From positions 2,418,001 to 2,482,000 of the forward strand of contig NC_135263.1 of the NCBI RefSeq assembly GCF_964204865.1: DNA of 64,000 bases, given 5' to 3'. The notes under the pieces were generated by a model. The model did not search any database and was not told the DNA's origin. It worked only from the letters and a program-made list of their open reading frames with translations. The translations under genes and the position numbers were made by a program. Each line of letters opens with the position of its first letter. Position 1 is the stretch's first letter. Of this stretch, positions 523 to 63,964 are shown in pieces. Source of the DNA: Styela clava (taxonomy: Eukaryota).

Positions 523-789
523 CTGAAGATTAACGTTTCTCTGGATAGCTTGAAGTACTCGCAGAGTGTGCGCAGGATGGATTAAACAATTCGCCAGCAT
601 AATTTTTTCCAACTTCGAATTTTCCAAAACTGATATCAATTTTTCGAAGCAATACTTTGGGATATGGGCAAGTTTTATCACGCGACCGCATTGCTCCGGA
701 TGAATTGACATTAACCTGTCTTCATCGTAAACATTTTTAAAAATAGATATTCTAGGAAAGTACTTGGTCCGCACTTGCTTGAAATTCAT
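523..789 (-). CDS. Gene 3, first coding exon (exon A) of the LRR+IDR family; rest of the gene lies left of the window
   Basis: ATG in aaaATGa context; 267 nt, same length as gene 1 exon A; MNFKQVRTKY...CGRVIKLAHIP...SKLEKIMLANC...IQRNVNLQ aligns with exons A at 63698-63964 and 35588-35866; donor CAG|GTGAGT; upstream acceptor ttgacag| at 819-820. Confidence 0.85.
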
Positions 790-2056
790 TTTGTAACAAA
801 AATTAGGAATCAGTATGCCTGTCAAACAAGAAAACATAATATGGTGGTTGCTGTCAGTGTTGGAGGGAGGGGGGCGGTAGGGGATAATTGATTCCAGTTA
901 TCTGAATGAAATGACAAGGATTCGTCATCAACTAACCTCCAGAGACATTGAACTTAGTGATTGACTCGAGTCCCGCCTTTTATGAATCGTGACTCGACTT
1001 GACTCGGGTCTTCCAGTGAACACTAATTGCTAATAATGGTTTCTTCCAGGTTTACTAATAATAGGTATTCAATAACTGTACTAACAGTCACCTTTTTTAA
1101 TTGTATACACAGACGTTGTCCATAAGGAAATATGCTTATACATTTGTATATATTATTTTCAAAGCTTATAAGAAAGTAAAGCATTCAATACCTATACTAG
1201 AAGCGAACTTTGCAATTTTTTTAATTGTACACGCACAGGCAGTCCATATGAAAATGATACAGTTACATATCTATTTTGTTTTGAAACAATAATAAAATGG
1301 ATTGCCATAGTCATGGTCAAAAATCAAAGAAAGTTATATTGTTTGCTTCTCGTCAGCTGTGTTGTGTCATAGGGATTATTGGTGATATTTGAAGAAGAGA
1401 AATCTCAAAAAAAGTTAGTCATTAAATTTAAAATCATTTTTATCAGCATCTAGGCCATGGTGATTATTTTTAACAATACAAAACAATTGGCTTTGGGGTT
1501 ATTCCTGTTCTCAAGACATAACAAGTTTCAATAAAAATATATTTCTGTAATTCGGAAAATAGTTCAAAACAAGGCACAGAATAAACTTAACTGATACCTG
1601 TCCCCTTCATATATATCCTGTATATATTCGGCTATATATAATCACCGTGATCTCCTATGCAACAAAGAATGCGTTGCATGAGCCGTTGTAAATCTAATAG
1701 GCTGCTGTAAATTTTTATGCTATTGAATCACAAATATTAAAACCCTTTGAACATTTTGCTACTCTTGACTGTAGTTAAATGACACGCATCCATAACTGTA
1801 TCACGCTCAGCCGTACTAAATTGAGCGGTAATCTCTTACCCTGCATATGTATTCAAAAAGCATTAAAAATTGATTGAGATTTATTCAACGAGGACAAGTC
1901 TTTGTTTGAGTCTGCATTGATTTAGTTAATCATAAATCCATTCTGCAAGCGACTTCAACGAAACACAGGTATCTTTATCTCAATTACTTATGACAAATAA
2001 AATATCCATATTTGATCGACTATGAAGAGATGATGTCGAATCTTGTCGACACAAAT

Positions 2057-2439
2057 CAGTGGTTCTCAAACGGTGGGGCGCGCCCTACAAGGGGAGCGTA
2101 GAAGCTAATTAAATATAAAAAAAATATTAGATTTTATCTTGCTCGCCTTATTTTGGATATTTACGATGTGCATTGTCCACCACAACATTTCGAAATAAAC
2201 ATCTTGTCAGTCAAAAACAACTTCACTATTAAAATACCAACAAGTTTTGCTTATTTTCAAAACTCTTAATTTATTTCATTATTTACGTCCCATCCACGTA
2301 TTTTCAACATGTTTTGGAATAACATACTTTCGCTTTATATTTGTTATTTATAGCTTGTTGGCTAGTTATTTTTAAAATGGTGTGCTAGACTCACAAATTC
2401 TAAGAAGGGGACGAGGCTTGAAAAATTCGAGAAGCACTG
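2057..2439. mobile_element. hAT-type MITE family 1 (CAGTGGTTCTCAAA ends)
   Basis: TIR-like ends; interior shared with copies at 4769, 9660, 28775, 54829 and 58824. Confidence 0.75.
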
Positions 2440-2670
2440 AATTAAATAATGACCTCAGTTCAACATGTTGAGTTTATGCAAATTACATGTTAAACCAAGT
2501 CGAAACTATTCTCTAACATAGTCATATAAATCTGGAATAAGTGTGGTTATACAGACATTTAGGCCCACGGACATTTGTAATCAAACATTTCGATCCACGC
2601 AGGCTTGAGCACAAAATTACGTTTATCAGTGGCTTGTGCCATGGGCACAATTTAGACAGCGGCGAAAAGT

Positions 2671-2958
2671 TTCAATTGTGAAAAGTTCTGATAATCTGAT
2701 TTAAACCTAAATTAAATAATACACGCATTTTTACTTTAATAACGTACAATGATTTCCAACAACAGCCATTAATAAATATTGTTAATAAACAATCAATCAA
2801 TCTTTAATAACCAATTCAATTGTGAAAAGTTCTGATAATCTGATTTAAACCTAAATTAAATAATACACGCATTTTTACTTTAATAACGTACAATGATTTC
2901 CAACAACAGCCATTAATAAATATTGTTAATAAACGATCAATCAATCTTTAATAACCAA
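2671..2958. repeat. Near-perfect 144-bp tandem duplication
   Basis: ttcaattgtgaaaagttctg...taataaccaa starts at 2671 and again at 2815. Confidence 0.9.
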
Positions 2959-3508
2959 TTCAGGAAGCCACAACTCAAATCCTACCACCCAAAGCCGCGT
3001 CTGATTACCAACCTTAGTAGGCTTAGTAGGAAGTTGTTGAGCCTCGTTGCATTTTCAAACTATGGGCGCCATTTAACGTTGATACGCTACTGACGTTCAT
3101 CAACAATGTGCGACGTGTGGTCCGAAACGTTTGCAAGCGTAAGTACGTATTAGCGTCGTTTCATATGCGGACGTAATAAACGGACGTATTGACGAAAAGC
3201 ATGACCCGAGACATCCACCTAATAGGTACCATGTTTCAGTATTGCGAAAATTCGACGATGAGTAAATATTGGCAACTTCGATTGTGTTTATTGTAAGACA
3301 GAGTGGAAAAGTTATGACTCGCGTCTTCTAAAACGATGACTGGACGACGCGTATAAACATGCCAGGCTTAAATTCGTTTGGAATCGTTTAAATATATAAA
3401 ATACGCACATACATAACCTTTGGTGAGTTTGGAAATGGTTCTTCTGGAGGTGCGCTTTGTATTTTACAGAATAGCTGCCAGCACAGCACAGACTTAGAAT
3501 AACCTATT

Positions 3509-5218: not shown

Positions 5219-6863
5219 CAGGGATGGCGGACCTTTTTCAATGAATGGGTCAAAAATCATATTTTTATCGCGGAACAGAAGAGAGTGGGTCACAGATATT
5301 TAATCAATGTTTGAATATATAAGAAACTTCTGAAACAAATCGTAATACAACGGTTCTGTTAATATTGGTGTAGTTTAGTGCTTTACTTTACAGGCCTTTA
5401 TCAGGAACTTTTTATGGCACTCGATTAAGAGTGCGAAAACACACATATGAATTACGTTTAGGATGATGCGCCAAATTATTTTACGGTTCCAAAGAGTTTG
5501 AAGGGAACTTCAATCTGATAGTGCTATATTTTTATATCAGCTTTAACCATATTAAAAGCACTTTCACACTGCCCCATTGTTATTCCAGATTTCTAGGTTT
5601 TTATTTCAAGTCTGAAAGATTTTGTATTCTCAACGGCTTTGTATGCGAGAAACTAATAAAATGCAAAGTAGCATCTCGTTCTCGTACAACCTGCAGATGC
5701 ACTTCTGAAAGAGACAAGACGTTGCGAGGAATGAACATGCATTGGATTGTTATGTCATAAACGATGTCAGAGCCAATAGCTGAATATAGGGTTTTATCAA
5801 TTCTAAAAAAACTCTTTAATTGGATAAAAAAAAACATCGTGTTTTAAAACAAAGGCTTGTTTTAAATCCCTTTTTTCTGTATTTTTTGTATTTTTTTTAT
5901 TGAAATACCCCTTGCATCGCCGCGAAACTACGCCAAAACGTTGCATTCGATCAGCTGAACACGCAGCCGGAATTATAATTTTAAAAATGTAAGTAAAAAT
6001 TCCTATTTGGATTTTTACTTCTATTGCGTACATTTATCACCATTTTCGTATCTCCACAAAAGTCATAAGATTTTAACCGGAATGTTTATCAGAGATATCA
6101 AAGAGACGAAAAATCATGAAAATTGGCTCACAAGCCTACTACGAAATTATTTAGAAGAATGGCAGCCTTCGACAAAAAGAGTGGTTTGCGATAATAAAGA
6201 AAAAGCTTACATCGACGGCGGATGAGACACGCTAGCCTGGCCTATGTTAATTGTAAGTCCTCTGATGCAAAGACGCCTCAACTAATCTGTTATGACGCCA
6301 TGATGTGGATTTCGAGTTCATGTATTGACATTTTTTTCATAAAATGAAGGCATTATTACGGTTAATACTGTTCGGTTAATTTATGCTTAGCAAGCTTTGT
6401 TTATAAGGTTGAAGTTATAGAGTTTTTCAAGATTATACAAACTCATTTATTCGATCGCATTTCAATTTTCGCAAGGTGGTTTCGTCGCGGGGTCGTTTAC
6501 GTAATGGCGTTACGTTATCGGTTGCGTCGTACTGCGCCAACCACTGAGATACAACCTGAGAAAGTGTGCATGAGCCTCTATCGTTATTTGTGGCGTTTTG
6601 AAGAATTTATTGCAAATAAGAAGCGCTTGGCAAGTTTTTGCATCCCTTTTCTTCAACCTATCCAATACAAAAAAAATAGTACAGCCATTTTGAACAAAAC
6701 AGGCAAAAAAACTTGATTTAGAACAATTGTTTTAAAACTATTCTTTTTGAACAAATCACTATGAATAACGGCACACAACGGTTAGCATGTTATCATTTTT
6801 TCTATTTTATTCGTGCCTTGGCGGGTCACGAATAAACCGCGAGTCAGTGGTTCGCCATCCCTG
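5219..6863. mobile_element. hAT (Buster-like) non-autonomous element
   Basis: TIR CAGGGATGGCG...CGCCATCCCTG; perfect 8-bp TSD ttctaggc. Confidence 0.88.
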
Positions 6864-9659
6864 TTCTAGGCCCTGTTCAGATAGAAGAAACAAAATATTC
6901 GACAATCCAGGTTTTGTAATTAAAATGCTATCCGCCTAAACGCGCCATAAAAACCAAATGTGCTGTAAAAAATGGGAGCCAATCAATTGGGGATTATAAG
7001 CATCCTTAAACCTTAATGCTTATTGTTCAAACGATAATTTGCTCACCTAGTTTAGTCATATTTTAGCATTTTTCTATTCGATTATGAAAATCTGTATATA
7101 TGTAACCAGGGTTGTGAGCAAAATTCGTATTTTCTGGTAGAGAATATGAAACGTAATGCTATTCACAAATTATACTGACAATACTGTACTTTTAGCGACC
7201 AGAAAAATTGCCTACATTGCCAAGCATAACACGACTTGATTGCACTCAACTTGGCTGATTTAAACCGAATTAATAACCAACTCAGGAAGCCTAAGCTCAA
7301 AACCAACCACATAAAAAAAGCTGCGTCCGACTAGCAACCTCAGTAAGCTATTAATAGGAAGTTGTTCCGCTCCCCTTGCTAAAACAGAAATACTCAATAT
7401 GCACAAATGTTTGAACAGTGAATCTCGTGATTTATTGTTTGTCGACAATGAAAGGTGTGTCACCACAAAGGTCAATATCGGTCAATAGGTGCATACTTTA
7501 TATTAGTTATAGTCAACTCTATCAAAATTCAATTATATTGAAAATGAACGTTACAAAGTTGCTATACGATGCTATAGTTTCCACCATGGTAAAGTCCGTC
7601 AGTTGTCGATGAGCAATAATTTACTCAACGTGTTTAATATATGATTCTCGTCTCGCATGAAATAAAAGAAACACTTTGTATCATTCAAAATATTACTTAT
7701 GGGCCGATTGTCTGACTCATTAATATATAAAGGAACTTGTCTTTTTGTTTTATTATAAAAAATGAAAAAAGAGTGTTTGCATAAAATGATTACTCACGGA
7801 TTAATTGAAAGTTTTTCTTACAAAACAAATTTCTTTGTACCAGCAGTACCTTCTTTCATAGAGCTTTGTTCGAAGCTGTAGGAAACCTAATAAAAAGATT
7901 ACCTGGACAAAAAGTTCCCCCGTATATACTTGATCAAGGCAATCCCAAACTGTTTTATACCTTAAGTTACTTATTGTTAATTCTATCAAATTAATCATAT
8001 AATATCTAAGTAACTTTATAACTGTAACATGAATTCCTATTCGTAATACGATTATATTGTTTTTCTCAGGTTAAAATTCCTCGAATATCGCTGAGCAATG
8101 ATTTACTCGTCGTGTTTAAATATATTCCGTATGCAATGAAATAGACAAGACACTTCGTTCCGTTCAAAATATTACTACTGGGCCGATTGCTTGACTCACA
8201 AATATATCGGAAATTTTTATCTCCTATTCATGGGCACGCAGTGTACATATCGAGTGCTTTTCTCGTTGGCTACTGGACCAATTGCTTCGAAATGTTTAGT
8301 GATTGAAAATTGTATTTTTTCTCCATAAGGGTATTACTTTTACTTAGTTAAAAATTTCTTTTGGTTCTAAGGGATCCGTGTTTGTGTGTGCGGTGACGTC
8401 ATCATAATAGAAAACTGTGCACCTTGTGGAGATTCCGCGTTCGCGATCTGGTGGCCAGGTGAGTGAAGAATGCGGTACCGGTAGTCGACTGTAAGAAATT
8501 GCATACCCGTACCACCCGCCTATATATTTGAGCATCGATCACTTATTAATATAAAATAATAGGAATGGTTGCGAAGAATGAACAAATAATTTTCAGAAAG
8601 GCTGAAGAATTAAAAAACGTTTTTATGCGACTCTCGACTCAGATTAGAAAATTCCAGTTTCAAATATCAGTAAGGATATATATAATCGCTTTCAGGTCCT
8701 TGACAATAGTAGATGTCTGTGTCGGTTAAATAAGCCTTTCATAAAATCTGAATATAATATAAGTTTGAACCGGGCGCTATCAGACACCGATATTGGTTTA
8801 CTTAGATCGGGTGTACAGGGTAAACTGCAATGGGAGTACAGAGCTCACGATTACATGCATTTTTAAACATGAATATATTCTTATCTTTTTCGTAAACGCT
8901 ATTAGTGTGAAAAGATTGATGATCTCAATAAAAGAATTCGACTTGTTTAATAGCATTTGCATTTTAACTTTGGAGCCGTGCCTGTCCTAAAACAATTTAT
9001 TATTATCGTTTTTTGATTTCTATTTATAAATTTTTTCCAAGGTTTTCAGTAACTGTCCACCCATCGTAGACAGATTTCGAATTCGGAAAGCATATCGCCA
9101 CTGATGCTAGTGATTTCTTGAAATCTGCGATAAATGTTTAAAAAATGAAAAGAGTCGAAGTGACTCCAGTGATTTAAATGAAAATAATCGGACTCCTCTT
9201 CAACTAACACCCAACTAACCAAGGTTGTGAGCAAAATTCGTATGTCATGATAGAGATTATGAAACGTAATTATATTCACAAATTGTACTGTACCCTTAGC
9301 GAGCAGAAAAATTTTCTACATTGCCAAGCAAAACACGACTTAATTGAACTCAAATTGACTGTATAACTATAAAATCATACGTCTAACGTGAAATAAAACT
9401 GCTTTCAACAATTCACCATAGAAAAAAAAACTATTTAAAAAATATTAATCAGCTCATTTACAAGATACCAAACTTAATGTGTTGATTTGCGCTACAAAGG
9501 AGATTCAATATGTACCAGCTGATGCTTGCCTTGTTCTAAGATGAAGATACCAAATGAAAAAATTTATGTATGATCCTCGCTGTGTTTCTTGTTAGTTAGC
9601 TGTTGTTTAATTGATTCTACTGCGTTTCATAATATAAATAAGCACTTCAGTTTTTGAAC

Positions 9660-10211
9660 TAGTGGTTCTCAAACAGTGGGGAGCGTCCCATAAGAGGGAC
9701 AAAGACAATTTTTTGGGCGCTCCCGTATTATGTGCAATATGATGGCGGACACCTGAACGTAGTGTGTGTACCAGCAGAGGGTTAGGTCATAATTTTATTC
9801 CAAATTTCATTATTTTAGTTCTATTACGAGTTCGTGAACTACCCAAGTGACTCCCGTAATATTTGTACCTGGAATTATGATCTAATCCTAACCTGTTATA
9901 CATATCACGTTCCGGTGTCCGTCATCTTGTTGCACATACTACGGAAGTACTATTTTTTGAGAAGGGCGTGAAGCTAGTTGAAGCTAAAAAAAAAATTGGC
10001 TGGATTTAATCTTGCCCACCATGTTTTGGATATTTACATTTCTTTATTGTTTACATTTCTATATTATGTACACGTGTTTTTGAACAAAACATACTTTTGT
10101 CTTACTATCTGTTATTTGTAGATTATTGTTAGCTAGATATTTTTGAAGTGGAGCGCGAGACTTGACAAATTCTAGAAAGAGAACACGGATTAAAAAGTTT
10201 GAGAACCACTG
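9660..10211. mobile_element. MITE family 1 copy interrupted by a foldback MITE
   Basis: Colinear with 4769-5083 apart from the insertion at 9716-9951. Confidence 0.8.
9716..9951. mobile_element. Foldback MITE family 2 (GG-ended, 8-bp TSD; Merlin-like)
   Basis: Long TIRs; TSD attttttg on both sides. Confidence 0.8.
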
Positions 10212-21808: not shown

Positions 21809-24339
21809 CTGAAAAAATAAAAGAAAGATAAAGCAAAGACAAAGTGGACCCCTATACCTATAAAAAAATATTTGAGCGCTTTGTGATTTCTTTTTTATAT
21901 CAGTAAAAAGTATAAAAATAATCGGTAAAAAGTATGAAAATAATAGTTCCTAGAAGATAAAGAATGATAATTTGAACAAAGCGATCCATAAATCCATTTT
22001 TTAACTATGTTGTTTTATCTAAAAAAATTTTTAAACTACGCAAATCAAGCTAAAGTTGAAAGTTGTATTGAATTTGACTGATCGTAAGTCCGTAATCGTA
22101 ATGCCAAGTCGCTGATTTTGTAAAACAAATCGCGCACGATTCAGAGATGATGAAATTACTTTTTAATTGATGGTGTTAACTCAGTTTTTAAGACATTAAC
22201 AGAGAGTAATTTTCTGATACTGTTCGTTCTGCTTGCAATGAAGCCAGATGGAGCATTTATCAAAAAATACCTCTGGATCTTAAAATTAAACTGAACGTCG
22301 AATGTGCATTTTGCGCTTATAGTACAAGCCACGTTAACTTTTATATTTCTTACATGCGGATATTCATGACATCAATTGTTTTTTAACAGCTAACCTCAGG
22401 ATAGTTGTCTACAAATCTTGTATATTTGTTTCGCTATGCTGTTCTTGATCTATATTCTACGATATAGAATTTAATATTCAAAACCTCAGAAATGTAGAAT
22501 ATATATTGCTGAACAAATTTCCAAAATTTTGGGAATTTATTGTATTGCATTGGCAAAAAAAATTCGGATGGTCTATCAGTTCATCACGACAAATACGGCT
22601 GGGTATTTTCGAATACCTGATAATTTCAGAATGAAATCGAATATTTTTTTTAATCGAATCTCGAATACTTGGGAGTCAATGAGAGCAATGTACATGTATG
22701 CGACTGTTTTATTGTAATTGGTCCTATCGACACATGAATTACAGAAGACATAGAATACATCACCCTGACAGATTGTTTACCGGTCACACACAATGGCATA
22801 CACTTTTTTGTCAATAGAAATGTCAGAATTGCGTTGAAAAATATGACTTCAGAAAAAAAAAATTGGGGAATTCACCTCGACCATTGGCGAAAAGAAAGAA
22901 AGATGGCGGCGATTCGAAATTTTGCTCTGATTCGATTCGAATAATTTACTATTCGAAATTCCTAGCCATAACGACAACCATTGAATATGGACGAAGGTAT
23001 TACTGAATCAGTACATGTCGTACACGCCTCAATTTAGAAAGGTCAGGAAAAAAGTTTGCTTACTCCTTTAGGTAAATAAATATCATCCCTTCTTTAAGGT
23101 ACGGCGGCTCCGGCTGATCGCCGTGACATAGTATTGGCCAGCTTTTATTGATATTTTACTTTTATGAAGTAAATTACTCTGGGTACCACCCTTTTACTGA
23201 CCTGCCTTCAACTTTCTGATTTTTTTCTTTCTATTAGGTTTGTTCTAGGTTAGATTAGATTGTTGACCGAAAAAAAGAAATGAAAATTTATGGCTGTACA
23301 CGGACAAGATATATGACTCTTGACGATGTTTCTTGCAAGAACCGGTACTTTTATTCGGCGTTGCTTACCAATTAAGCAGAGATCGTGTTATTAAAAACAG
23401 TTACAAGCTTTTAAAAGGCCGGAAACACATAATGTTCCGGCGCATTTTATGGCTACTTCCCTAAAACGTGTTCAATATGGCACAAACCTTGTCTAGGATT
23501 GGCTATACGCTCGTTCCTTTGAGGTTCAGCCGAAAACAATAGAGAACGACTGTTTCGAGGTTGATTTCTTCCTGTAAAAAAAGATGGGGAATTGCAATGC
23601 GTATCGATAAAAATAGAAATTTGTTGCTTGTTAGCAACGGCTATTACTTTTTTTCAAGTCGAAATGAATTCATATCACCCACTTCCAGAAGTGCATGGTA
23701 TCTCGCCGCCGAAGTGACTCCGTGCCAGTGGGCCAATCGGTTTCGCATTTTCCATTACTTTATATAGAAAAGTGTCTAGAAGGCTATTACTTTTTTCAAG
23801 ATTCAAGTTTGACCCGTTGAATGAATTCATACCACCCACTCGATAGAGTGCATGGTACCTGGCCCCAAGGTAGCTCCGTGCGTCCAAAAGCTTTGGCAGG
23901 ACGTCGATTAATCATTTACTTAAGCCACCAATCACCATCTGGATGAATGAAAAAATGCCACTCTATTCAAATGTAATCTAATGCTGAGAAATTGCGTTTG
24001 CCACAACTTTACTTTTTTACTAACCTCTATCTGGGTTCACAAAATGAGAGGACATAGGTGCAGAACGACTGGCGGGCCGAACCGGCGGGTCTGTGTGAGC
24101 TAAAAAGATTAAAAGGATGTAAGTCAATTTTTTATAACACTGTACAAAAAAATTGGTACTAATTTTTGTCTAGATTTCTTGTTAGCTTTCGATATGCACT
24201 TTGGAAAAGTTACGTTATTATTTTCCTAAATTTTGGTTTAGTAAAAAATGGGTGAGATATAAGATTTCTTACCTAGAATATAAAGGTTACACCCCAACAA
24301 AAAATACAAGTAATATCAAAAACTATGTTATATTTTTAC

Positions 24340-24447
24340 CTTGGTGATCGGGTTGTTCATCTGTATACAGGAACTGATACCTGGAGCGGAAATCAGAACT
24401 GGCCCTTGGTCTCTCCATAGTGTGCAGTAATTCTCGTTCCCGTTGGG
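24340..24447 (-). CDS. Gene 2 tail exon G, copy 2 (recent duplicate)
   Basis: Same splice sites as 26941-27048; reads ...SSDFRSRYQ... (G to R change). Confidence 0.58.
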
Positions 24448-26940
24448 CTGTATGAGCAAACGTAAAAGTCAATCGTAAAATTGTTGATCCAGATATCGAA
24501 GCAGTAAATACCATAGTTTCCAGCGATAAAAAGCTTTTTGGAGCAAATCTGTGATTTCTGAGGACTTTTTGCGTATCCACCACAGGTAGTTCGAGTAGTA
24601 AAGTAAGCACTGATGCGTAAGTATTTACTATGTTCCGGGATATTAGCTATCTTTTTTTATGTACAATATATATATGTCGAGATTAGACATTTCATATTCT
24701 GATAAGAATGCAATAAATATTCAAGTACTATTCACTACTAGTCAAGTAGAAAACTATTTACGGAATATTGCAATTCCAATTACTACGGCTGACGTTGATC
24801 GAAAATTTCCAACAAATATTTTTGAAAATCTGTTTTTATTGCTCTCTAGCACCAGCACGTAGAAAGCGACCTGATTGGTGATTAACACCTTTATACACAC
24901 ACAATGGCATACACTTTTTTGTCAATAGAAATGTCAGAATTGCGTTGAAAAATATGACTTCAGAAAAAAAAAATTGGGGAATTCACCTCGACCATTGGCG
25001 AAAAGAAAGAAAGATGGCGGCGATTCGAAATTTTGCTCTGATCCGATTCGAATAATTTACTATTCGAAATTCCTAGCCATAACGACAACCATTGAATATG
25101 GACGAAGGTATTACTGAATCAGTACATGTTGTACACGCCTCAATTTAGAAAGGTCAGGAAAAAAGTTTGCTTACTCCTTTAGGTAAATAAATATCATCCC
25201 TTACTTTAAGGTACGGCGGCTCCGGCTGATCTTCGTGACATAGTATTGGCCAGCTTTTATTCATATTTTACTTTTATGAAGTAAATTACTCTGGGTACCA
25301 CCCTTTTACTGACCTGCCTTCAACTTTCTGATTTTTTTCTTCCCATTAGGTTTGTTCTAGGTTAGATTAGATTGTTGACCGAAAAAAAGAAATGAAAATT
25401 TATGGCTGTACACGGACAAGATATATGACTCTTGACGATGTTTCTTGCAAGAACCGGTACTTTTATTCGGCGTTGCTTGCCAATTAAGCAGAGATCGTGT
25501 TATTAAAAACAGTTACAAGCTTTTAAAAGGCCGGAAACACATAATGTTCCGGCACATTTTATGGCTACTTCCCTAAAACGTGTTCAAAATGGCACAAACC
25601 TTGTCTAGGATTGGCTATACGCTCGTTCCTTTGAGGTTCAGCCGAAAACAATAGAGAACGACTGTTTCGAGGTTGATTTCTTCCTGTAAAAAAAGATGGG
25701 GAATTGCAATGCGTATCGATAAAAATAGAAATTTGTTGCTTGTTAGCAACGGCTATTATTTTTTTCAAGTCGAAATGAATTCTCTGGGTACCACCCTTTT
25801 ACTGACCTGCCTTCAACTTTCTGATTTTTTTCTTTCTATTAGGTTTGTTCTAGGTTAGATTAGATTGTTGACCGAGAAAAAGAAATGAAAATTTATGGCT
25901 GTACACGGACAAGATATATGACTCTTGACGATGTTTCAAGAACCGGTACTTTTATTCGGCGTTGCTTACCAATTAAGCAGAGATCGTGTTATTAAAAACA
26001 GTTACAAGCTTTTAAAAGGCCGGAAACACATAATGTTCCGGCACATTTTATGGCTACTTCCCTAAAACGTGTTCAAAATGGCACAAACCTTGTCTAGGAT
26101 TGGCTATACGCTCGTTCCTTTGAGGTTCAGCCGAAAACAATAGAGAACGACTGTTTCGAGGTTGATTTCTTCCTGTAAAAAAAGATGGGGAATTGCAATG
26201 CGTATCGATAAAAATAGAAACTTGTTGCTTGTTAGCAACGGCTATTACTTTTTTTCAAGTCGAAATGAATTCATATCACCCACTTCCAGAAGTGCATGGT
26301 ATCTCGCCGCCGAAGTGACTCCGTGCCAGTGGGCCAATCGGTTTCGCATTTTCCATTACTTTATATAGAAAAGTGTCTAGAAGGCTATTACTTTTTTCAA
26401 GATTCAAGTTTGACCCGTTGAATGAATTCATACCACCCACTCGATAGAGTGCATGGTACCTGGCCCCAAGGTAGCTCCGTGCGTCCAAAAGGTTTGGCAG
26501 GACGTCGATTAATCATTTACTTAAGCCACCAATCACCATCTGGATGAATGAAAAAATGCCACTCTATTCAAATGTAATCTAATGCTGAGAAATTGCGTTT
26601 GCCACAACTTTACTTTTTTACTAACCTCTATCTGGGTTCACAAAATGAGAGGACATAGGTGCAGAACGACTGGCGGGCCGAACCGGCGGGTCTGTGTGAG
26701 CTAAAAAGATTAAAAGGATGTAAGTCAATTTTTTATAACACTGTACAAAAAAATTGGTACTAATTTTTGTCTAGATTTCTTATTAGCTTTCGATATGCAC
26801 TTTGGAAAAGTTACGTTATTGTTTTCTTAAATTTTGGTTTAGTAAAAATTGGGTAAGATATAAGATTTCTTACCTAGAATATAAAGGTTACACCCCAACA
26901 AAAAATACAAGTAATATCAAAAACTATGTTATATTTTTAC

Positions 26941-27048
26941 CTTGGTGATCGGGTTGTTCATCTGTATACAGGAACTGATACCTGGAGCCGAAATCAGAAC
27001 TGGCCCTTGGTCTCTCCATAGTGTGCAGTAATTCTCTTTCCCGTTGGG
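26941..27048 (-). CDS. Gene 2 tail exon G, copy 1
   Basis: ctcatacag| (A)QRERELLHTMERPRASSDFGSRYQFLYTDEQPDHQ+G |GTAAAA; 108 nt, phase 1-1. Confidence 0.62.
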
Positions 27049-28652
27049 CTGTATGAGCAAACGTAAAAGTCAATCGTAAAATTGTTGATCCAGATATCGA
27101 AGCAGTAAATACCATAGTTTCCAGCGATAAAAAGCTTTTTGGAGCAAATTTGTGATTTCTGAGGGCTTTTTGCGTATCCACCACAGGTAGTTCGAGTAGT
27201 AAAGTAAGCACTGATGCGTAAGTATTTACTATGTTCCGAGATATTAGCTATCTTTTTTTATGTACAATATATATATGTCGAGATTAGACATTTCATATTC
27301 TGATAAGAATGCAATAAATATTCAAGTACTATTCACTACTAGTCAAGTAGAAAACTATTTACGGTATATTGCAATTCCAATTACTACGGCTGACGTTGAT
27401 CGAAAATTTTCAACAAATATTTTCGAAAATCTGTTTTTATTGCTCTCCAGCACCAGCACGTAGAAAGCGACCTGATTGGTGATTCTAGCACATTCGTACG
27501 GCGAGAAAAAATGTTTTTATAAAAGATGTCAAATGTCCCTGAGGACCATTCCGTTATATATGGTCCAAATTAGCTTTTAGCGAATTACCCGATATTTGGG
27601 GCATTGTTCGAACTTATTCTTTAGGAAACTGCTCTCTTAGTGCTTTTTATTTAAAGCAGGGGTCGGCAAACTGCGGCCCGGAGGCCAAATGTGGCCCGCG
27701 AGCTAATTTATTGTGGCCCTCGAACGACCCTACATTTAATACATGAAACAAAAATTGATCCTAAATTTATTATTGTCTCCACACATATTTATGTGGTATA
27801 TAAGTGCTGCTGTACGGCACTTGTTTTGTAACAAGCAGCGTCAGTAATATGTCGTTCGAGTTAATATTGATTTCTAAATTCAAAATCGAAGGGAAGCTTG
27901 CGATGTCGGTTGAGCATTCCAAAGTGCATGGACGAAAAAATATTTTTCTTTTGTGTTCATTCCAAAACCAGTGTTCTCGATATGCTCAGTCAGCATCGCA
28001 GTTATTAAGAGATTCAACGTTAAACTCGGATTAAACGGATTTTGGGTTTCCTTCAACCTGAAGCCAGAATCGAAATCAATATTTTTCGTCAGGAATTAGG
28101 ATTTGTTTCTGGTCATTTCTAGGAGAGTCACTTAGCCAGTCACCGAACTCGTAATACAACTAAAAAGGGGAAAATTGGAATAAAATTATGGCATAACCCG
28201 AACCTGGTACACATACTATGTTCTGGTGTCCGCCATCTATGTTTACATACTTCGGGAGCGGCCGGGCTAGTACTATTAGACTAAATAGGATATTGATTGC
28301 ACTGTATGTAATACTCACTCGCAAATCCGAAGCTTTCCTCTTTTTGCTCCAAGCCCCGGTCTTAATTTTTTTCCATTTTGACGATTCTTTTTTGTCTAAA
28401 TTATCATTGCATAAAATTTATTTAGTTTCATACACAAATATGTTTGTTATATGATGAACTTGTGTGTAAATTTTATCTATTTCAGTGCGCGATGGCCCAG
28501 TTGAATTCAAACCTCATTCGCATGACCCGATGTTCATTTAATCAATTGAAGTCCGAATTGAGGAGGGGACATCCTCAACTCTACGGCGCTGCTCCTCAGC
28601 CGAATTTCAAGTATGCATAATCTCAGCTTTTTATAAAAGTATTTTAACCGAC

Positions 28653-28725
28653 CTGAAATTTTCTGGGAAGCTAATTGCTCGGAAATTCTCACCATTTCGT
28701 CGTCCATCCCAGATCTTTTCGCTGC
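28653..28725 (-). CDS. Gene 2 exon F
   Basis: gttcag| AAKRSGMDDEMVRISEQLASQKIS+G |GTCGGT, phase 0-1; homologous to 56521-56602. Confidence 0.72.
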
Positions 28726-29186: not shown

Positions 29187-29336
29187 TATGTTTGCGTTAT
29201 CAGATCGGTTGCTCCGTTTGCTCCCTGGCTTGTATTGCTGCCAAGCATCTAGTCCAATTCTAGTCACCAATGTTATTACTTTCTTTTCCCTGCACTTAGT
29301 TGCTCGATTATATACCATTCTGACTGCTTCTTTGAA
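29187..29336 (-). CDS. Gene 2 exon E (helical linker, first half of NLS)
   Basis: ttctag| FKEAVRMVYNRATKCREKKVITLVTRIGLDAWQQYKPGSKRSNRSDNANI |GTAAGT; homologous to 57443-57583; not in the ORF track. Confidence 0.82.
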
Positions 29337-30027: not shown

Positions 30028-30114
30028 CGAGACGCTTAATTTGCCGCGATAAACGTCAACGTCTTCCATGTGCTTCACAGCTTCAAACCACTTAACTTCG
30101 GGGCTTTTTCTTGT
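30028..30114 (-). CDS. Gene 2 exon D (probable LRR C-cap)
   Basis: ttgtag| TRKSPEVKWFEAVKHMEDVDVYRGKLSVS |GTGAGT; aligns with gene 1 KLKIEWF. Confidence 0.8.
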
Positions 30115-30764: not shown

Positions 30765-30953
30765 CTGTTTCTTACCCAAGGTTAATGCCTGTTGGAGAAC
30801 AGCTTTGTCCTTTGTTGTTAATTTTGACTTACATACGCCTTGACAGTTTGCCAAGTTGAGTTCTTTGGAGATTCTTCCTTTGGCCAATAATTCGTGTAAG
30901 TGGATGAAAGCTGTAGTGTTGAGAGTACAGCCATTCAAATTGACAATCTTCAA
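30765..30953 (-). CDS. Gene 2 exon C (LRR)
   Basis: tttcag| LKIVNLNGCTLN...GRISKELNLANCQGVC...GKKQ |GTGAGA; 189 nt, phase 0-0, same length as 59155-59343. Confidence 0.88.
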
Positions 30954-32754: not shown

Positions 32755-32919
32755 TTCTCTTTGGCAGTTCAATATTCCGGCCAACAACCTTTCAGAGTTT
32801 TCTTCGTTAAGTTCTCTTGGAACTTCGATGGAATTGACAACCCCGCGGGTGATAAGGTCTATAATAGCATCAACACACTCATTGTTGTGAACGTTGTCCA
32901 TCAAGTTCAAATGTACGCT
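32755..32919 (-). CDS. Gene 2 exon B (LRR)
   Basis: tttcag| SVHLNLMDNVHNNECVDAIIDLITRGVVNSIEVPRELNEENSERLLAGILNCQRE |GTGAGA; 165 nt, phase 0-0, same length as 61551-61715. Confidence 0.88.
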
Positions 32920-35587: not shown

Positions 35588-35866
35588 AAGTAAGCAATCA
35601 TTTCTTTGCATCGATTCAAGAATTTGTAGTGTCTGGAATGGATCGTTGAAACAGGCGATCAAAGATATTTTTTCCATTTGGGAATGTAAAATGACGGATT
35701 TCAATTTGTTGAACAGAGTATAAGGAACATGACTTAAACAAAGTTCCCGTCCACATTTTTCTGGCAAAATAGATTTTAGTCGTCCCAAGTCCTTGACATT
35801 TTTCATTGTACGATCCTTACTGATAAAAGAGTGTCTGTTGTGAGCGTAGGAAAGACATGATTTCAT
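35588..35866 (-). CDS. Gene 2 exon A (start; LRR N-cap and first repeats)
   Basis: MKSCLSY...KCGRELCLSHVP...MEKISLIACF...MQRNDCLL; donor CTT|GTAAGT phase 0; homologous to the other two A exons. Confidence 0.85.
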
Positions 35867-48356: not shown

Positions 48357-48423
48357 CTACATTCGTTCCTCAGGTGCATCTTCAAACCTTTCATCGTCGG
48401 AATCATTATCTCCGTGTGGATGT
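48357..48423 (-). CDS. Gene 1 probable terminal exon (acidic, FFAT-like)
   Basis: ttttcag| phase 2, (R)HPHGDNDSDDERFEDAPEERM then TAG TAG; phase matches the 49021 donor. Confidence 0.55.
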
Positions 48424-49020
48424 CTGAAAAGCCAATTGAAGTAATGAATTTAACTTTATATCGACTCTCCATTGAGAGTTTTAAGAATATGACAAAAAAT
48501 GAATTCTCAAATAAAAAATGCGAAAGTTCTTCACGGTGTCGGTAAACATATGAGCTCATAGGCCACTCCTCTAAAATCAGTGAATTCAATCCGCATGGTG
48601 GCGCGTTTGTTTCAAAATGGCGAAGTTTTATATAAAACAATGGGCCATGAAAAGTCAAAATATGTTTAACTGCTGAAATTTTGTTTTCGAACTCTGAAAA
48701 TTATTCAATGAATGGTTCTAGTGCTTGCATAAAAAACAACTTTGGTGTATGTATGGCTTCATAGTCGCACACCAAGGTAAAACTCGCATTGTATTATGAC
48801 GCAAATGTACGTTAATAGGCGACTTCAGAGAGGACATGTATCTTTGGAGTTTTGATATTTACCTTGCTACGCGAAATTGTGGCCATCCTGTAAAATTAAA
48901 GCTGCAGGCTTCTGTGAGAAATTTTCGTCATTAACCATTGACAATTTGAAAGATATAATTACAGAGAAAAACGATTTTTTATAACAAGAACAACAACAAG
49001 AATTCCAGCACACGAATTAC

Positions 49021-51742: not shown

Positions 51743-51823
51743 CTTGTGGTATCCTAGCTTCGGCGCACTGATGAACAGTATTGTTGACGTTGTGTTGATC
51801 TCTCGAAGCATTCGCTGGTCGCT
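51743..51823 (-). CDS. Gene 1 tail exon
   Basis: gtaacag| (E)RPANASRDQHNVNNTVHQCAEARIPQ+G |GTAGGT; 81 nt, phase 1-1. Confidence 0.68.
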
Positions 51824-51901: not shown

Positions 51902-52112
51902 GGTACTCCCTGTGAATTCAAGTATGTGTACCAGGTTTAAAGTTAGGACATAATTTCAGGTACAAATACTTCGGGAGTCACTTGGCTAGTCCCCGAACTC
52001 GTAATAGAACTAAAATTAGGAAAATTGGAATAAAATTTTGGCCTAACCCTAATCTGGTACACATACTACGTTCCGGCGTTCGCCATCTTGGTTCACATAC
52101 TTTGGGAGTACC
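51902..52112. mobile_element. Foldback MITE family 2
   Basis: GGTACTCCC...GGGAGTACC; TSD caaaattc. Confidence 0.87.
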
Positions 52113-52545
52113 CAAAATTCGATCACAGGGCTAGTCATTGTCACAGACTACGTATTCGTCAGGTTTCAAATTTTCATTACTCACAGGAGAAGTCGCTAGA
52201 GAGCTAATAATTTCATTGTTTTTGAATTCACGGGGACACTGTTATACAGCACATATTCGCGTGACATTTGGTACAATACAATCGTCTGGAATTGAACTGA
52301 TTTTGCAGTGATCCTATTAGTGAATTTCAGGCTTGTCCATGGGACATATTTGTCTGTCCTATACCATCTCATAACAGTATATATATGCTTGTCCCATTTA
52401 CACGGGCACGCCAGAGGTTTTTCATGGGAATCCCATTCTCATGGACAACCCTGGCGGTGTTCCACCACAAAATAAATAATAGTTACAAGTATTTGAAGAA
52501 GTTTTTGGTTCATGTCAAATTTTAAACCTCAAGTAAATTACAAAC

Positions 52546-52614
52546 CTGGTGGGTTCACATGCGGTCTTGGGCTATGCCAGTGAGACGGAGGTTGTAATTG
52601 GCCATGGTGCCCCA
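52546..52614 (-). CDS. Gene 1 tail exon, Q/P/H repeat 3
   Basis: tttcag| (V)GHHGQLQPPSHWHSPRPHVNPP+G |GTTTGT; 69 nt, phase 1-1. Confidence 0.75.
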
Positions 52615-53024: not shown

Positions 53025-53093
53025 CTGGTGACTTCATATGCGGTCCTGAGATCTGCCACGGAGACGGAGGTTGGGATTGGCCTTGGTGCCCCA
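53025..53093 (-). CDS. Gene 1 tail exon, Q/P/H repeat 2
   Basis: tttcag| (V)GHQGQSQPPSPWQISGPHMKSP+G |GTTTGG; 69 nt, phase 1-1. Confidence 0.75.
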
Positions 53094-53541: not shown

Positions 53542-53622
53542 CTTGTTGATTCATATATTGTTCCTGGTTCAGCCATTGAGACGATGGTGGCAAGGAGCGG
53601 CCATGTTGAGGATGTTGTCTCT
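53542..53622 (-). CDS. Gene 1 tail exon, Q/P/H repeat 1
   Basis: gttttag| (E)RQHPQHGRSLPPSSQWLNQEQYMNQQ+G |GTTTGT; 81 nt, phase 1-1. Confidence 0.72.
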
Positions 53623-54442
53623 CTAAAACAAAAGGTGAAGTGTAAAATGCAAAATGCAACATTATTATTGTTGCTCTTGACATTTTCGCTGTTATTGTAA
53701 AAAAATCGCTTTTCTACTAAACGAATAGACCAAAGGAATTTAAATTTTCAATGCTTTAGTTAGATTTAAACCACTAGGCTACTATTACTCTTACCTATTT
53801 TCTATTTCTTCAGAGTCTGATCGGGTATGATATTCCACCACACAATATCTGTTTGTTCATATACCACCTCGTGGGAGTCTGTGAAACTCGGTGCTAATCT
53901 AAGGCCGCTGTACCAACTATGTATGAATTGAATATTTTAAACGGGTAATCGTCTATATTTTCAAATGATTAATTTTGGCAATCACATATTAAATGAACTC
54001 TTTATGTATGCGAAGCTACGCCCACCGGTAGCCGGACTTGGCACAAAATTTCCATTCGAAGCCGAGGGCTACTTTATTTGCCTCGACGTCGTGATATAAA
54101 GTTACAAACATGAAATGTAAATAAGGTAGTAAAATCAGCAAGGTTTTTATGCTCAAAATTGGGTATTCCCCCAGTATGTGTATCAGGGTGGGGTTAGGAC
54201 ATATGTGGATATCCATGTGGATATACCCCTGCCCATTAGTTTCAGTTCCTTTACACAACTTGATGTAAAGTGGGCGAACGAAATAAGTTACCTCAATAAT
54301 AGTACACATACTACTGAAGTGCCCAAAATTGGTCTTTTCTCGTGTTCATATGTTAGGGCATACCGCCCTTGAAATATCATTAGTTTATGCAGGGTAATTT
54401 CTTACCTAATAGGATGACAAAATTTTTTAAAGCTTCACTAAC

Positions 54443-54508
54443 CTTGACCAAGGTTCACAAATAAGGACTCTGGATTTGTGCGAGAATGTCCAACTACCTG
54501 GTTGTCAA
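54443..54508 (-). CDS. Gene 1 tail exon
   Basis: attccag| (V)DNQVVGHSRTNPESLFVNLGQ+G |GTTAGT; 66 nt, phase 1-1. Confidence 0.62.
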
Positions 54509-54828: not shown

Positions 54829-55131
54829 CAGTGGTTCTCAAACAGCGAGGCGCTCCCCACAATGGGGCGTAGACTATTTTGAGGGGGCGTGAAGCTAGTT
54901 AAAATAAAAAATAATGGTTAGATTTCATCTTGTCCGCCTAATTTTGGATATTTACATTTCTTTATTCTTTAGAGATTGCAGAGAGCTGTTGTGCTTGTAT
55001 CTTCACTATTCTTAGCGTGGAGCTTTACTATCTGTTATTTGTACATTATTGTTAGCCTATTTTTGAGGTGGGTCGCGCGATGTGAGAAATTGTAAAAAGG
55101 GGACGCGGCTTTAAAAGTTTGATAACCACTG
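54829..55131. mobile_element. MITE family 1 copy
   Basis: TSD cgttagtg / tgttagtg. Confidence 0.82.
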
Positions 55132-55176
55132 TGTTAGTGAGAAGCAAGACCAGTGCAAAAACATAGAACATTAAGG

Positions 55177-55410
55177 GGCGCTCCCCTAGTATGTGCACCA
55201 AGATGGCGGACACCGGAACGTAGTATGTGTACCAGGTTAGGGTTAGGACATAATTTTATTCCGATTTCCTTATTTTAGTTCTATTATAAGTTTAGGGACT
55301 AGCCAAGTGACTCCTGTAGTATTTGGACCTGGAATCATGGCCTAACCCTAATCTGGTACACATGCTACGTTCCGGTGTCCGCCATCTTGGTTTCCATACT
55401 ACAGGAGTAC
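55177..55410. mobile_element. Foldback MITE family 2
   Basis: About 70-bp near-perfect inverted arms; TSD not clear. Confidence 0.8.
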
Positions 55411-55886
55411 CGAATAATGAATGGTTGAATCGATAGCACTATTCAATATTGAAATACTAACCAGCGCTGGATTGGTCGGGAATAGGATTTGCTTTACATT
55501 CTTGAGGCTGTGATTCGTCGCGTTCTCTCGTAATTGAGGCTGAAATAAATAATTGCACTCAGTTTGATTTCATTTTACACTATAGGGCATAGGCCATGGT
55601 TTCTTTAAATTGGCCCTTTGTTGGCTTTTCAATATTAAACTTAGCGAGTAAAAAAGCTGATGGAATCTGTTAAAAACAAAACTAGGTATTATTATTTTAA
55701 AGAACGGGGGCCCCAAGGAGTGTTGAGAGTTTCGTCAAATATGACTTCGATCCGGGTTCCCGGAAATATGAAACAAACGACTCCGACTTGAAAATCATGT
55801 AACAAAGACTTCAAACGCCAACTGCACGACTTTTAAAATTGTTAAGTTAATCGAAATTAACTTACTTTCACACACAAATTGCTTAC

Positions 55887-55949
55887 CAGAACAGGAAGCT
55901 TCTTGCTGCCTATTTCGTCCAAATATGCCTTTCTTTGATCGCTTTTTAT
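55887..55949 (-). CDS. Gene 1 tail exon (basic)
   Basis: ttattaag| (D)KKRSKKGIFGRNRQQEASCS+G |GTAAGC; 63 nt, phase 1-1; the AAG acceptor is weaker than usual. Confidence 0.5.
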
Positions 55950-56520: not shown

Positions 56521-56602
56521 CAAATAAAGTCTGTGATTCAATTTGCTTCGTGATGTCTTCAAGTTCCTTGTCTTCTATCTTTGGCTTCTTAGCGTTTGAA
56601 GT
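56521..56602 (-). CDS. Gene 1 exon F
   Basis: ttccag| TSNAKKPKIEDKELEDITKQIESQTLF+G |GTTAGT; phase 0-1. Confidence 0.8.
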
Positions 56603-57442: not shown

Positions 57443-57583
57443 AGAAGCTGTAGTTATTTTGTTTCTTTTCTTCCCTGATTTCAGAATCTGGTACGCCGCG
57501 CGACCGGTGCGAACGAGAGATACGACAGTTCTTTCTCTCCTATTCGTCGTTCGATTGAAAATCCATCTGATATCATCGAAAAA
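57443..57583 (-). CDS. Gene 1 exon E
   Basis: ttttag| FFDDIRWIFNRTTNRRERTVVSLVRTGRAAYQILKSGKKRNKITTAS |GTAAGT; 141 nt. Confidence 0.83.
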
Positions 57584-58173: not shown

Positions 58174-58263
58174 CTCAAAGTTTCTCCTATTGACCTTGGC
58201 GATGTCCTTTTCTCCAATATATTCAACGAAGGGAAACCATTCAATTTTCAGTTTCTTGCTCAA
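58174..58263 (-). CDS. Gene 1 exon D
   Basis: ttctag| LSKKLKIEWFPFVEYIGEKDIAKVNRRNFE |GTACGT; 90 nt, phase 0-0. Confidence 0.82.
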
Positions 58264-59154: not shown

Positions 59155-59343
59155 AAAGCTTCTACTGGACTTTTCAGCTTTCGCAAGTTCATCTTTTTCT
59201 TTTGTCGTCAAAGATGAATAGCATAATCCTTTGCAATTCGACAAATTAAGAAATTTGTTGATCCTTCCCTTTTGTAAAAGCTCCTTTAGCAGTTCGATTG
59301 ATTTTTCGTTCAATGTACTGCCGTTGAGGTTCAAGATCTTCAT
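59155..59343 (-). CDS. Gene 1 exon C (LRR)
   Basis: tttttag| MKILNLNGSTLN...GRINKFLNLSNCKGLC...SSRSF |GTACGT; 189 nt. Confidence 0.88.
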
Positions 59344-61550: not shown

Positions 61551-61715
61551 CTGTTTATTGCTTGTTAATATTTCACTGAGAAATCTCTCTGTATTTTCGT
61601 CATTCATTTCGAGCGGAACTTCGACTGAGTTAACGATGCCACAACATATTAGGTTTATCAAAGTAGCAATACATGCTTCATTGTGAGTGTTATGCTGTAT
61701 GTCAAGATGAACATT
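61551..61715 (-). CDS. Gene 1 exon B (LRR)
   Basis: ttccag| NVHLDIQHNTHNEACIATLINLICCGIVNSVEVPLEMNDENTERFLSEILTSNKQ |GTAGCT; 165 nt. Confidence 0.88.
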
Positions 61716-61950
61716 CTGGAAAAAAAGAAAAATTCAAGCTCTGCGACGCTTTCAAAGCCTCTAATCAAGCAACAAGAACTAATACGAAAGTACCCATCTT
61801 TTTTACCAGACTCTTTCCAGTTTGGCATTTAGTACCCGATTTATTTTTCCTACAACATCAATGACGTCTTTCTAACAGTCACTGATATCTAACCATATGG
61901 AAGGATTTTCAAATACCTGAAGATGTCAGTGTCGAATCAAATACATTACT

Positions 61951-63565
61951 ACCATCTTAATACAACCAAACATCCATCTGCATCGTAATACAACCAAATA
62001 TCTCATCCCATCTTAATACAACTAAATATCCCATTTTCATTTTAATACAACCAACGTTGAACGTTATATTATATTATTATAAGATGGGAATTAGTTTTTG
62101 GTTGTATTAAGAGGATAAATTAATTTTTGGTTGTATCAAGATGAGAATAGGAATTTTGGTTGTATTGAGATGGGATAGGTATTTTGTAGTATTACCATGA
62201 GAATTGTGTTTGGTTGTATTAATTGGGAAAGTTATATTTTGTTGTATTAAGATGAGAATAGGATTTTGGTTTTATTAAGATGGAATAGGTGGTTGGTTGT
62301 ATTAAGTTGGGATTGGATGTTTGGTTGTATTAATTGGAAAAGTTATATTTTGTTGTATTAAGATGAGAAAAGGAAATTTGGTTTTATTAAGATGGAATAG
62401 GTGGTTGGTTGTATTAAGATGAGAATTGGATGTTTGGTTGTATTAAGATGGGACAGGTGTTTGGAATAAGTGGTTGGTTGTATTAAGATGTGAATTGGAT
62501 GTTTGGTTGTATTAAGATGAGATGGATTTTTGGTTGTATTAAGATGGGACATATGTTTGGTTGTATTAAGATGTGAATTGGATGTTTGGTTCTATTAAGG
62601 TGGGAAAGTTATATTTCGTTGTCTTAAGATGGCAAATAATTTTTGGTTGTATTAGGATGAGAAAAGGAAATTTGGTTTTAATAAGATAAAATAGGTGGTT
62701 GGTTGTATTAAAATGAGAATTAGGTGTTTGGTTGTATTAAGATGAGGATTGAACGTTTGGTTGTATTAATTGGGAATGTTACATTTGGTTGTATTACGAT
62801 GAGTAATGGATATTTGGGTATATTAAGATGTGCAATGTATGTTTGGGTGTATCAAGATGGGAAACGGATATTTAGTTATATTAAAATGGGAAAGTTGGAT
62901 TTGGTTGTGTTAAGTTGGGACAGGTATTTGCTTGTATTAAGATTATAATTGGATGTTTGGTTGTAATAAGTTGCGAAAGTTGTATTTGGTTGTATTAGGA
63001 TGAGAATTGGTAATTTGGTTGTATTAAGTTGGGAATGATATTTTTGGTTGTATTAAGATGGGAATTGAATAGATGGTTTTATTAAAATGAGAATTGGTTC
63101 TATTAATACAACCAAATACAACATTCCCAATCTATACCATTCCCATCTTAATACAATCAAATATTTAATTTCCATCTTAATACAACCAAATATCCTATCT
63201 TATCTCAGTACGACCAATTATCCAATTCCCATCTTAATACAACCCAATATCCAATTTTCATCTCAATATAACCAAATACTATATTCGCATCTCAATACAA
63301 CGAAATATCCTTTCCCAACTTGATACAGCCAAATATCCAATTCTCCTATCTCATCTCCGGAACAACCAAACACAACATTTCCACTTAATACAACCAAACA
63401 TATCATTCGCTTCTTAATACAACCAAATATGATTTTCTCATCTTAATACAACCAAAAACCTTGTCCCATCTTAATACAATCAAATATCTAATTTCCATCT
63501 CAATACAACTAAACATCCCATTCTCCCTATTCAAATACACTATTCCCATCTTAATACAACCAAAC
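61951..63565. repeat. Satellite of ~24-bp units (core CATCTTAATACAACCAAA) in three blocks of alternating orientation
   Basis: Forward about 61951-62055, reverse about 62080-63097, forward about 63101-63565. Confidence 0.93.
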
Positions 63566-63697
63566 TGTACTTCCCTATCAGTGAATCCACCCAAATTCGA
63601 GGATTCTAGCGTATGAACCGGGAAACACAAGAACGACTATCGTATTTCCAACGTCTAACACAATAGGCCAACTGGAAGGAATCAAAGTCATACTTAC

Positions 63698-63964
63698 TTT
63701 CAAGCTAGTATTCTTCTGTATTACTCCAAGAACTTTTGATAGCAAACGTGCATCTTTGAAACATTCTTTTAATTCAATTTTCTCGAGTTTTGAATATTCC
63801 AACACTTCCAAAAGTTTTTCAAAAGACTCCTGAGGTACAGAGCTCAAAGATAGTTCTCTTCCACACTTATGTGGTGCAATAGAATGAAGAGTCTGTATAT
63901 TGTACACGTTTCTCGCCTTGCTGTCTCGCTGGGCATATCTTGATTGTATTTCATTGAACGCCAT
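63698..63964 (-). CDS. Gene 1 exon A (start; LRR N-cap and first repeats)
   Basis: aaaATGg with upstream in-frame TAA; MAFNEIQSRY...KCGRELSLSSVP...SKLEKIELKECF...IQKNTSLK |GTAAGT; 267 nt. Confidence 0.87.

Follow-up and report, generated by a model that had tools for sequence, protein, structure and literature searches.

Does a cluster of leucine-rich repeat (LRR) genes in the tunicate Styela clava, each joining a common head to a disordered tail and lacking a NACHT domain, encode sensors in rapid diversification, or a constrained set of intracellular adaptors? The question is raised by a 64,000-nucleotide stretch of contig NC_135263.1 (hereafter the window; G000:C18:2418001-2482000, free of N runs, in a genome of 377 Mb), for which an earlier reading of the sequence, here called the original prediction, had proposed a family of three NACHT-less LRR genes with one type of head and unrelated, swappable tails. 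We put the probability that the members are LRR adaptors or scaffolds, and not receptors for variable ligands, at roughly 0.7. In the best-supported account, they are intracellular adaptors, probably targeted to the nucleus, with a common partner on the LRR face and a tail that varies through the turnover of exons.

The family and its leucine-rich repeat head

Self-comparison of the stop-free segments in the window recovers exon A three times, on the minus strand in each case, at 63698-63964, 35588-35866 and 523-789; the corresponding gene starts are 63964 (gene 1), 35866 (gene 2) and 789 (gene 3). With 37-44% protein identity among the three copies (E 1e-17 to 1e-22 within the window), the minus-strand paralogues that had been proposed are real relatives, but the family does not stop at three. 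A whole-genome search with exons A, B and C puts at least 10 members on the same chromosome (C18, 2.415-3.307 Mb, both strands): ten loci match in two or more exons, and exon B alone has one extra match at 3.12 Mb. Four more distant copies lie elsewhere, three on C17 and one on C2. Two of the distant copies were read, and both hold an exon A-like open reading frame starting with Met and an exon C-like one. The head exons at the 10 loci are all open and their splice sites intact. Among these loci, gene 3 and gene 7 (L013, C18:2598001-2608000), which lie 188 kb apart, share 94-98% protein identity in their exons at a synonymous divergence (dS) of 0.02, and their intron segments are 90-100% identical when translated; the pair is a recent segmental duplicate, introns included.

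The fold of the head was modelled with AlphaFold2 on the 396-residue RefSeq protein of gene 2 (XP_077976366.1, hereafter P0003). The model reaches a pLDDT of about 90 over residues 20-225, and within residues 38-212 it shows six strand-helix units. Its best Foldseek matches are the LRR domains of NLRP1, NLRP2, NLRP14 and NLRP3, and VIA-align superimposes it on the ribonuclease inhibitor RNH1 with a Z of 17.3 and a root mean square deviation of 3.0 A over 195 aligned residues, followed by CARMIL (Z 16.6), RanGAP1 (16.2) and the whole 197-residue LRR of NLRP1 (15.8). The neighbours of the head in the ESM Atlas are all LRR clusters of the ribonuclease inhibitor-like (RNI-like) kind, and hhalign places the family profile against a fish NLR-type LRR with 88% probability (E 3e-6), in LRR register. 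The motif LxxLxLxx(N/C)xL is visible and conserved in exons A-C, though no Pfam LRR model matches there at E up to 1; a phmmer search of PDB sequences with single exons gave only a weak match to RanGAP1 (E 0.13). The LRR identity assigned to the head is thus borne out by the pLDDT of the model, the match to RNH1 and the profile alignment: as modelled, the head is an RNI/NLR-type solenoid of about 225 residues and about six beta-alpha repeats, encoded by exons A-C. A shared head of about 310 residues had been put forward, of which the LRR takes up those ~225; the remainder, exons D-E, is conserved in sequence (an I-E-W-F block and an A-W-Q..K-P-G-S-K-R block) and is modelled at low confidence, that is, as a conserved segment without a confident fold. 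A Lys/Arg-rich patch follows at the end of E and in F and G.

Is this head diversifying? Exon-by-exon estimates of nonsynonymous (dN) and synonymous divergence by the Nei-Gojobori method say otherwise. For the pair of genes 8 and 9, dN is 0.16 and dS 0.69 (dN/dS 0.23), and for genes 2 and 4, dN is 0.28 and dS ~2.5 (dN/dS 0.11); the recent duplicates, genes 3 and 7, give 0.71 (dN 0.015, dS 0.021) on very few changes. Synonymous sites are saturated among all three window genes (proportion of synonymous differences 0.78-0.81), so these are old paralogues, and the head is under purifying selection, with a dN/dS of 0.11-0.23. Constraint is also distributed unevenly over the fold: in nine paralogues, the mean frequency of the commonest residue is 0.69 in beta-strand columns, 0.54 in helix columns and 0.48 in loop columns, and even exposed strand residues are kept, as in H-L-D-L and L-N-L-N-G. 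Conservation in the head is thus highest at the beta-strand positions, those that carry the concave face. Diversifying LRR receptors vary their ligand face, the opposite of what is seen in this family, and the conserved strand face suggests one common binding partner. On all three counts, the low dN/dS, the saturated dS and the conserved strand face, the rapidly diversifying sensor of the original prediction is not what the head looks like.

The family is rare. A profile of exon A built from nine sequences has 9 matches among 1.84 billion representative proteins: six S. clava RefSeq proteins, every one labelled "uncharacterized", two short ENA/Logan contig fragments (P0008 and P0009), and a fish "ribonuclease inhibitor-like" protein of the NLR type (E 8e-4). 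Neither P0008 nor P0009 has a near-identical locus in this S. clava genome, and so they come from other organisms. Word-based protein searches returned one match for exon A, a 102-residue ENA fragment (P0001), and S. clava proteins only for the family alignment, and literature on Styela clava leucine-rich-repeat proteins yielded nothing on this family. Together with the absence of Pfam matches, the short list of profile hits upholds the view that the family is unnamed and lineage-restricted: it is limited to Styela clava and a few unattributed relatives, and is present in RefSeq as unnamed models.

Gene structure, transcript and tails

Gene 2 exons A-F correspond to P0003 residue for residue, and all lie on the minus strand, as do those of gene 1. 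Exon A of gene 2 (35588..35866, 279 nt) is identical to P0003 residues 1-93, and is followed by B (32755..32919, 165 nt), C (30765..30953, 189 nt), D (30028..30114, 87 nt), E (29187..29336, 150 nt) and F (28653..28725, 73 nt, phase 0 to 1). In gene 1, exon A (63698..63964, 267 nt, phase 0-0, ATG at 63964, donor GTAAGT) encodes the N-terminal cap and first LRRs; exon B (61551..61715, 165 nt, 55 aa, 48% identical to its gene 2 counterpart) encodes two LRRs, and exon C (59155..59343, 189 nt, 54-59% identical) two more and the capping helix. Exon D (58174..58263, 90 nt) carries the conserved I-E-W-F segment, exon E (57443..57583, 141 nt, seen in contig pieces) has the basic patch at its end, and exon F (56521..56602, 82 nt) runs from phase 0 to 1. 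Gene 3 contributes exon A (523..789, minus strand, 267 nt) to the window, its exons B, C and E lying just beyond (L011). The lengths given in the original prediction are reproduced throughout (A 267/279/267; B 165/165; C 189/189; D 90/87; E+F 141+82 against 150+73, or 223/223); exon borders are canonical AG/GT, with A-E all in phase 0 and F ending in phase 1. Exon B encodes exactly two LRRs, and exons of RNH1 and NLRP LRRs likewise encode two repeats in symmetric phase. RefSeq isoforms of two genes skip exon B, and an isoform of another gene skips exon D (isoforms P0004, P0006 and P0002 of genes 10, 9 and 4); such skipping is allowed because the exons are in phase 0, and the loss of exon B would shorten the solenoid with the frame kept.

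Gene 1 is transcribed and spliced from the head into the tail. Four runs of one study, presumed to be RNA, contain intron-less contigs of the form E-F-G-H-I-J-K-L-M, with eight junctions (57443/56602, 56521/55949, 55887/55539, 55462/54508, 54443/53622, 53542/53093, 53025/52614 and 52546/51823), the two that flank exon F (56602/57443 and 55949/56521) in all four runs. All eight borders read CT..AC on the plus strand, that is, GT..AG for a minus-strand gene, and because the contigs lack introns and have canonical borders in the direction of gene 1, their source is spliced RNA. The contig comparison covered the 6-kb stretch from exon E to M, and exons A-D were placed by arithmetic alone: in a 1427-nt contig, exon E occupies contig positions 772-918, and the record coordinates leave room before it for D, C, B, A and about 66 nt. 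The contigs differ from the reference by 0-2% in E-F and by up to 4-6% in the tail exons J-L.

The predicted joining of head to tail is thus found in junction-spanning contigs, which lead from exon F into seven tail exons of 63-81 nt, all in phase 1-1 and rich in Q/P/S/H/N, that make up G-M. These are G (55887..55949, 63 nt, Lys/Arg-rich and resembling a nuclear localisation signal, NLS), H (55462..55539, 78 nt), I (54443..54508, 66 nt), J (53542..53622, 81 nt, Q/P/H-rich), K (53025..53093, 69 nt), L (52546..52614, 69 nt), which is a duplicate of K, and M (51743..51823, 81 nt, donor GTAGGT), past which the contigs extend for at least 252 nt.

The introns have features of their own. Intron 1 of gene 1 holds a 29-bp minisatellite (62080-63097, ~35 copies at ~70% match), and 63139-63522 is an array of its reverse complement, so that together they make up an inverted repeat, large but imperfect. 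Introns also contain, on both strands, a family of short interspersed repeats (51900-52300, 54100-54300, 54900-55500, 41540-41934, 28123-28417 and 9663-10006); summed contig depth at these sites is 6,000-20,000, compared with about 10 for gene 1 exons, and so copies elsewhere in the genome are very abundant in RNA.

What, then, of the claim that genes 1 and 2 share nothing recognisable after exon F? It proves too strong. In every member, exon F is directly followed by a Lys-rich, NLS-like exon, with S-K-K-R-K in gene 2 and K runs in genes 5 and 6. At the other end, the C-termini of gene 1, gene 4 and P0018, an older RefSeq protein of 703 aa under the gene id of gene 2, are alike: an acceptor, R-H-P, an acidic run, F-E-D-A-x-E, and a stop 2-3 codons on. 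The putative last exon of gene 1 (48363..48424, minus strand, stop at 48363-48365) is homologous to that of gene 4 (L022 7781-7843); the cores are R-F-E-D-A-P-E in gene 1 and N-F-E-D-A-R-E in gene 4, with 5-7 acidic residues among the 10 upstream. A six-frame scan of 281 kb for the pattern F[EFYK]DA.E gives two matches only, one at the 3' end of each of these two genes; for gene 2, no comparable last exon was found in the window. The tail region of gene 2 (22600..27500, minus strand) contains exons homologous to the tails of gene 4 (44-71% identical) and P0018 (61-71%), in 2-3 copies through a tandem duplication with an offset of about 2.6 kb and an inner 489-bp repeat. The tails are related by descent and are not unrelated modules, which leaves little of the swappable tails that had been envisaged; they change through exon duplication, loss and change of frame.

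Gene 2 illustrates the last of these. Its exon G (28319..28395, minus strand, 77 nt, Lys-rich) ends in phase 0 instead of phase 1, and since ancestral tail exons are in phase 1, the tail exons that follow fall out of the ancestral frame. In its RefSeq model, gene 2 accordingly has two tail exons read in a shifted frame and terminates at 26641 or 24040, so that in this assembly it encodes a truncated protein, comprising the head, the basic patch and little else. Gene 4, in its RefSeq model, has a tail of 63-102-nt exons chained across 12 kb. The tails of all members are polar, rich in S/Q/N/P/R and poor in hydrophobic residues, which make up 16-19% of the tail in the five other RefSeq models counted. 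For P0003 the figure is 31%, as its last residues, about 55 read outside the ancestral frame, are richer in hydrophobics.

P0018 keeps an intact tail of about 400 residues with the acidic tip. Exon by exon, its identity to gene 2 is 75-88%, and this genome holds nothing closer. Similarly, P0001 is 78% identical to exon A of gene 1 and continues into the intron. Either individuals differ in the genes that the cluster contains, or P0018 and P0001 belong to close relatives.

The NACHT question and the rival accounts

Could an upstream NACHT domain have been overlooked? The 5' ends speak against it: six paralogue RefSeq models begin at the conserved exon A Met, the frame of gene 1 is closed by a stop 8 codons ahead of the ATG (open frame from 63988), and, by arithmetic on the contig coordinates, only ~66 nt of its transcript contig precede that ATG. 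A six-frame search of the genome for NACHT scored 97 hits and none inside the family cluster, the nearest (C18, 3.42 and 3.44 Mb) lying ~113 kb past the last family member. The description of the genes as NACHT-less accordingly stands. Eight family proteins gave no Pfam match to NACHT, PYD, CARD or death domain, and the same proteins yielded neither a signal peptide nor a transmembrane segment or effector domain.

Two NACHT loci encountered in that search may be recorded here. C18:3418757-3421807 (L020 2757-5807) is a 1016-aa open frame with Death and NACHT, without an LRR in the same frame. On C2, between 0.02 and 8.9 Mb, more than 50 NACHT hits in open frames of ~467 aa, many of them ~80-100 kb apart, suggest a NACHT gene array of great size and regularity, its members nearly identical.

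For the adaptor account, we envisage that the strand face of the LRR would bind one common partner, that the basic patch may act as a nuclear localisation signal, and that the disordered tail would supply multivalent contacts specific to each paralogue. The acidic tip of some members may be a short linear motif, perhaps an FFAT-like one predicted to bind VAP. The FFAT consensus is EFFDAxE with an acidic flank (PMC8306308). The x-F-E-D-A-x-E of gene 1, gene 4 and P0018 agrees with it at positions 2, 4, 5 and 7, behind an acidic tract. As judged from these residues, an acidic tip resembling an activation domain would be an equally simple reading.

Several points weigh against the adaptor account. 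The partner, the localisation and the adaptor role are all things that we infer. The AlphaFold2 run was based on an alignment of 6 sequences, P0003 and five paralogues, and Pfam gives no match, LRR models included, for single exons or for eight full-length family proteins, even at E 1. At position 3 of the FFAT consensus, the family core has Glu, not Phe/Tyr; the RefSeq models of genes 5, 6, 9 and 10 lack the motif; and in gene 1, the last exon is putative, since it and any exons after M lie beyond the stretch compared with contigs. Genes 1, 3 and 7 have no RefSeq protein among the exon-A profile matches. Finally, the divergence of P0018 may reflect strong variation between haplotypes, and this would speak for a role in recognition.

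This last point leads to the sensor reading, in which a fast-diversifying allorecognition, sensor or germ-line system combines one LRR head with exchangeable tails, and variation between paralogues and individuals is the point. It would suit a gene cluster shaped by birth and death, with one recently duplicated pair (genes 3 and 7, dS 0.02), a truncated member and duplicated tail exons, contigs that depart further from the reference in J-L (up to 4-6%) than in E-F (0-2%), and the proximity of Death-NACHT genes, ~113 kb past the last member; P0018, just 75-88% identical to gene 2 despite the same gene id and without a closer genomic copy, and P0001, at 78% identity to gene 1 exon A, point the same way. 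We nevertheless regard it as unlikely, given a head with dN/dS of 0.11-0.23, saturated dS among the window genes, a strand face that is conserved and not hypervariable, tails that share first and last exons and are homologous between genes 2 and 4, and proteins that yielded no sign of a signal peptide, transmembrane segment or effector domain. More specifically, the cluster might be a haplotype-variable recognition system, in which individuals carry different gene sets or very divergent alleles and the tails are paralogue-specific signalling or condensation modules. This we hold to be quite improbable; if true, tunicates would have a new self/non-self or immune family that is intracellular and NACHT-less.

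A very improbable reading is that tails are truly exchanged by exon shuffling, gene 2 having captured the C-terminal exon of an unrelated gene. The candidate is the Ser/Gly/Asp-rich open reading frame at 21459-21842 (minus strand), which the original prediction took for the large tail exon of gene 2; it is located downstream of that gene and shares its strand. Its relatives in this genome are in two places, both on C4. The better match, 46% identity over 80 aa, is to the C-terminus of a 509-aa open reading frame (L021 4484-6013, minus strand) that contains long hydrophobic runs and otherwise resembles nothing in the window; the second is 22 kb from it. The shared Ser/Asp-rich segment reads I-S-N-F-S-T-A-S ... 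A-W-S-G, and neither the 21459-21842 frame nor the 509-aa frame has a Pfam match. As a homologue of the gene 4 tail, the former was rejected for want of similarity. It is absent from the RefSeq model of gene 2, which ends upstream, at 26641 or 24040; it sits behind the stop codon of the sole supported transcript model, no read evidence links it to gene 2, and it could equally well be a small gene of its own or a fragment of a pseudogene. Alternatively, the genes could be decaying NLR remnants, LRR ends that lost the NACHT part and drift without function. The nearest folds and profile are NLR-type LRRs, the genomic NACHT repertoire is very large (97 scored hits), the gene 2 tail is frameshifted, genes 3 and 7 have a dN/dS of 0.71, on very few changes, and the profile search returned no RefSeq protein for gene 1, gene 3 or gene 7. 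Against such decay stand head exons that are open at 10 loci with intact splice sites and a dN/dS well below 1 over saturated dS, correct splicing of transcribed gene 1 over 13 exons (E-M junctions seen, A-D by arithmetic), six RefSeq models that start at the conserved exon A Met, and a conserved D-E-F-G segment without an NLR counterpart. We consider this account extremely unlikely.

Known systems and meaning

How does the family, taken as adaptors or scaffolds, relate to known LRR proteins? Like the LRRs of RNH1 and NLRP1, its head is built of alternating beta-strand and alpha-helix repeats of ~28 residues (28-29), but it has only about six of them and no Pfam LRR match. Unlike the NLRs, it places the LRR at the N-terminus, followed by a basic patch and a disordered tail of 300-550 residues, without NACHT, PYD, CARD or death domain. 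CARMIL, RanGAP1 and leiomodin share with it the combination of an RNI-like LRR and, after it, an extended disordered region bearing short linear motifs, and the ESM Atlas neighbours of the head include LRR clusters of the tropomodulin/leiomodin type. However, there is no sequence kinship with these proteins beyond generic LRR, their PH domain, WH2, CPI motif and RanGAP C-terminal domain were not found in the family by Pfam, and the family itself is found only in S. clava and three unattributed fragments. On present evidence, it is a new combination of a known RNI/NLR-type LRR, and not a new mechanism.

No invertebrates are more closely related to the vertebrates than the tunicates, whose LRR and NLR repertoires often serve in arguments about how innate immunity arose. 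In that setting, the family indicates that an NLR-type LRR module can stand alone at an N-terminus, fused to a basic patch and a low-complexity tail, and expand to more than 12 copies. It also offers a testable short motif at the C-terminal tip, and it provides a compact case of disordered tails that evolve through the duplication of small symmetric exons while the folded head remains constrained.

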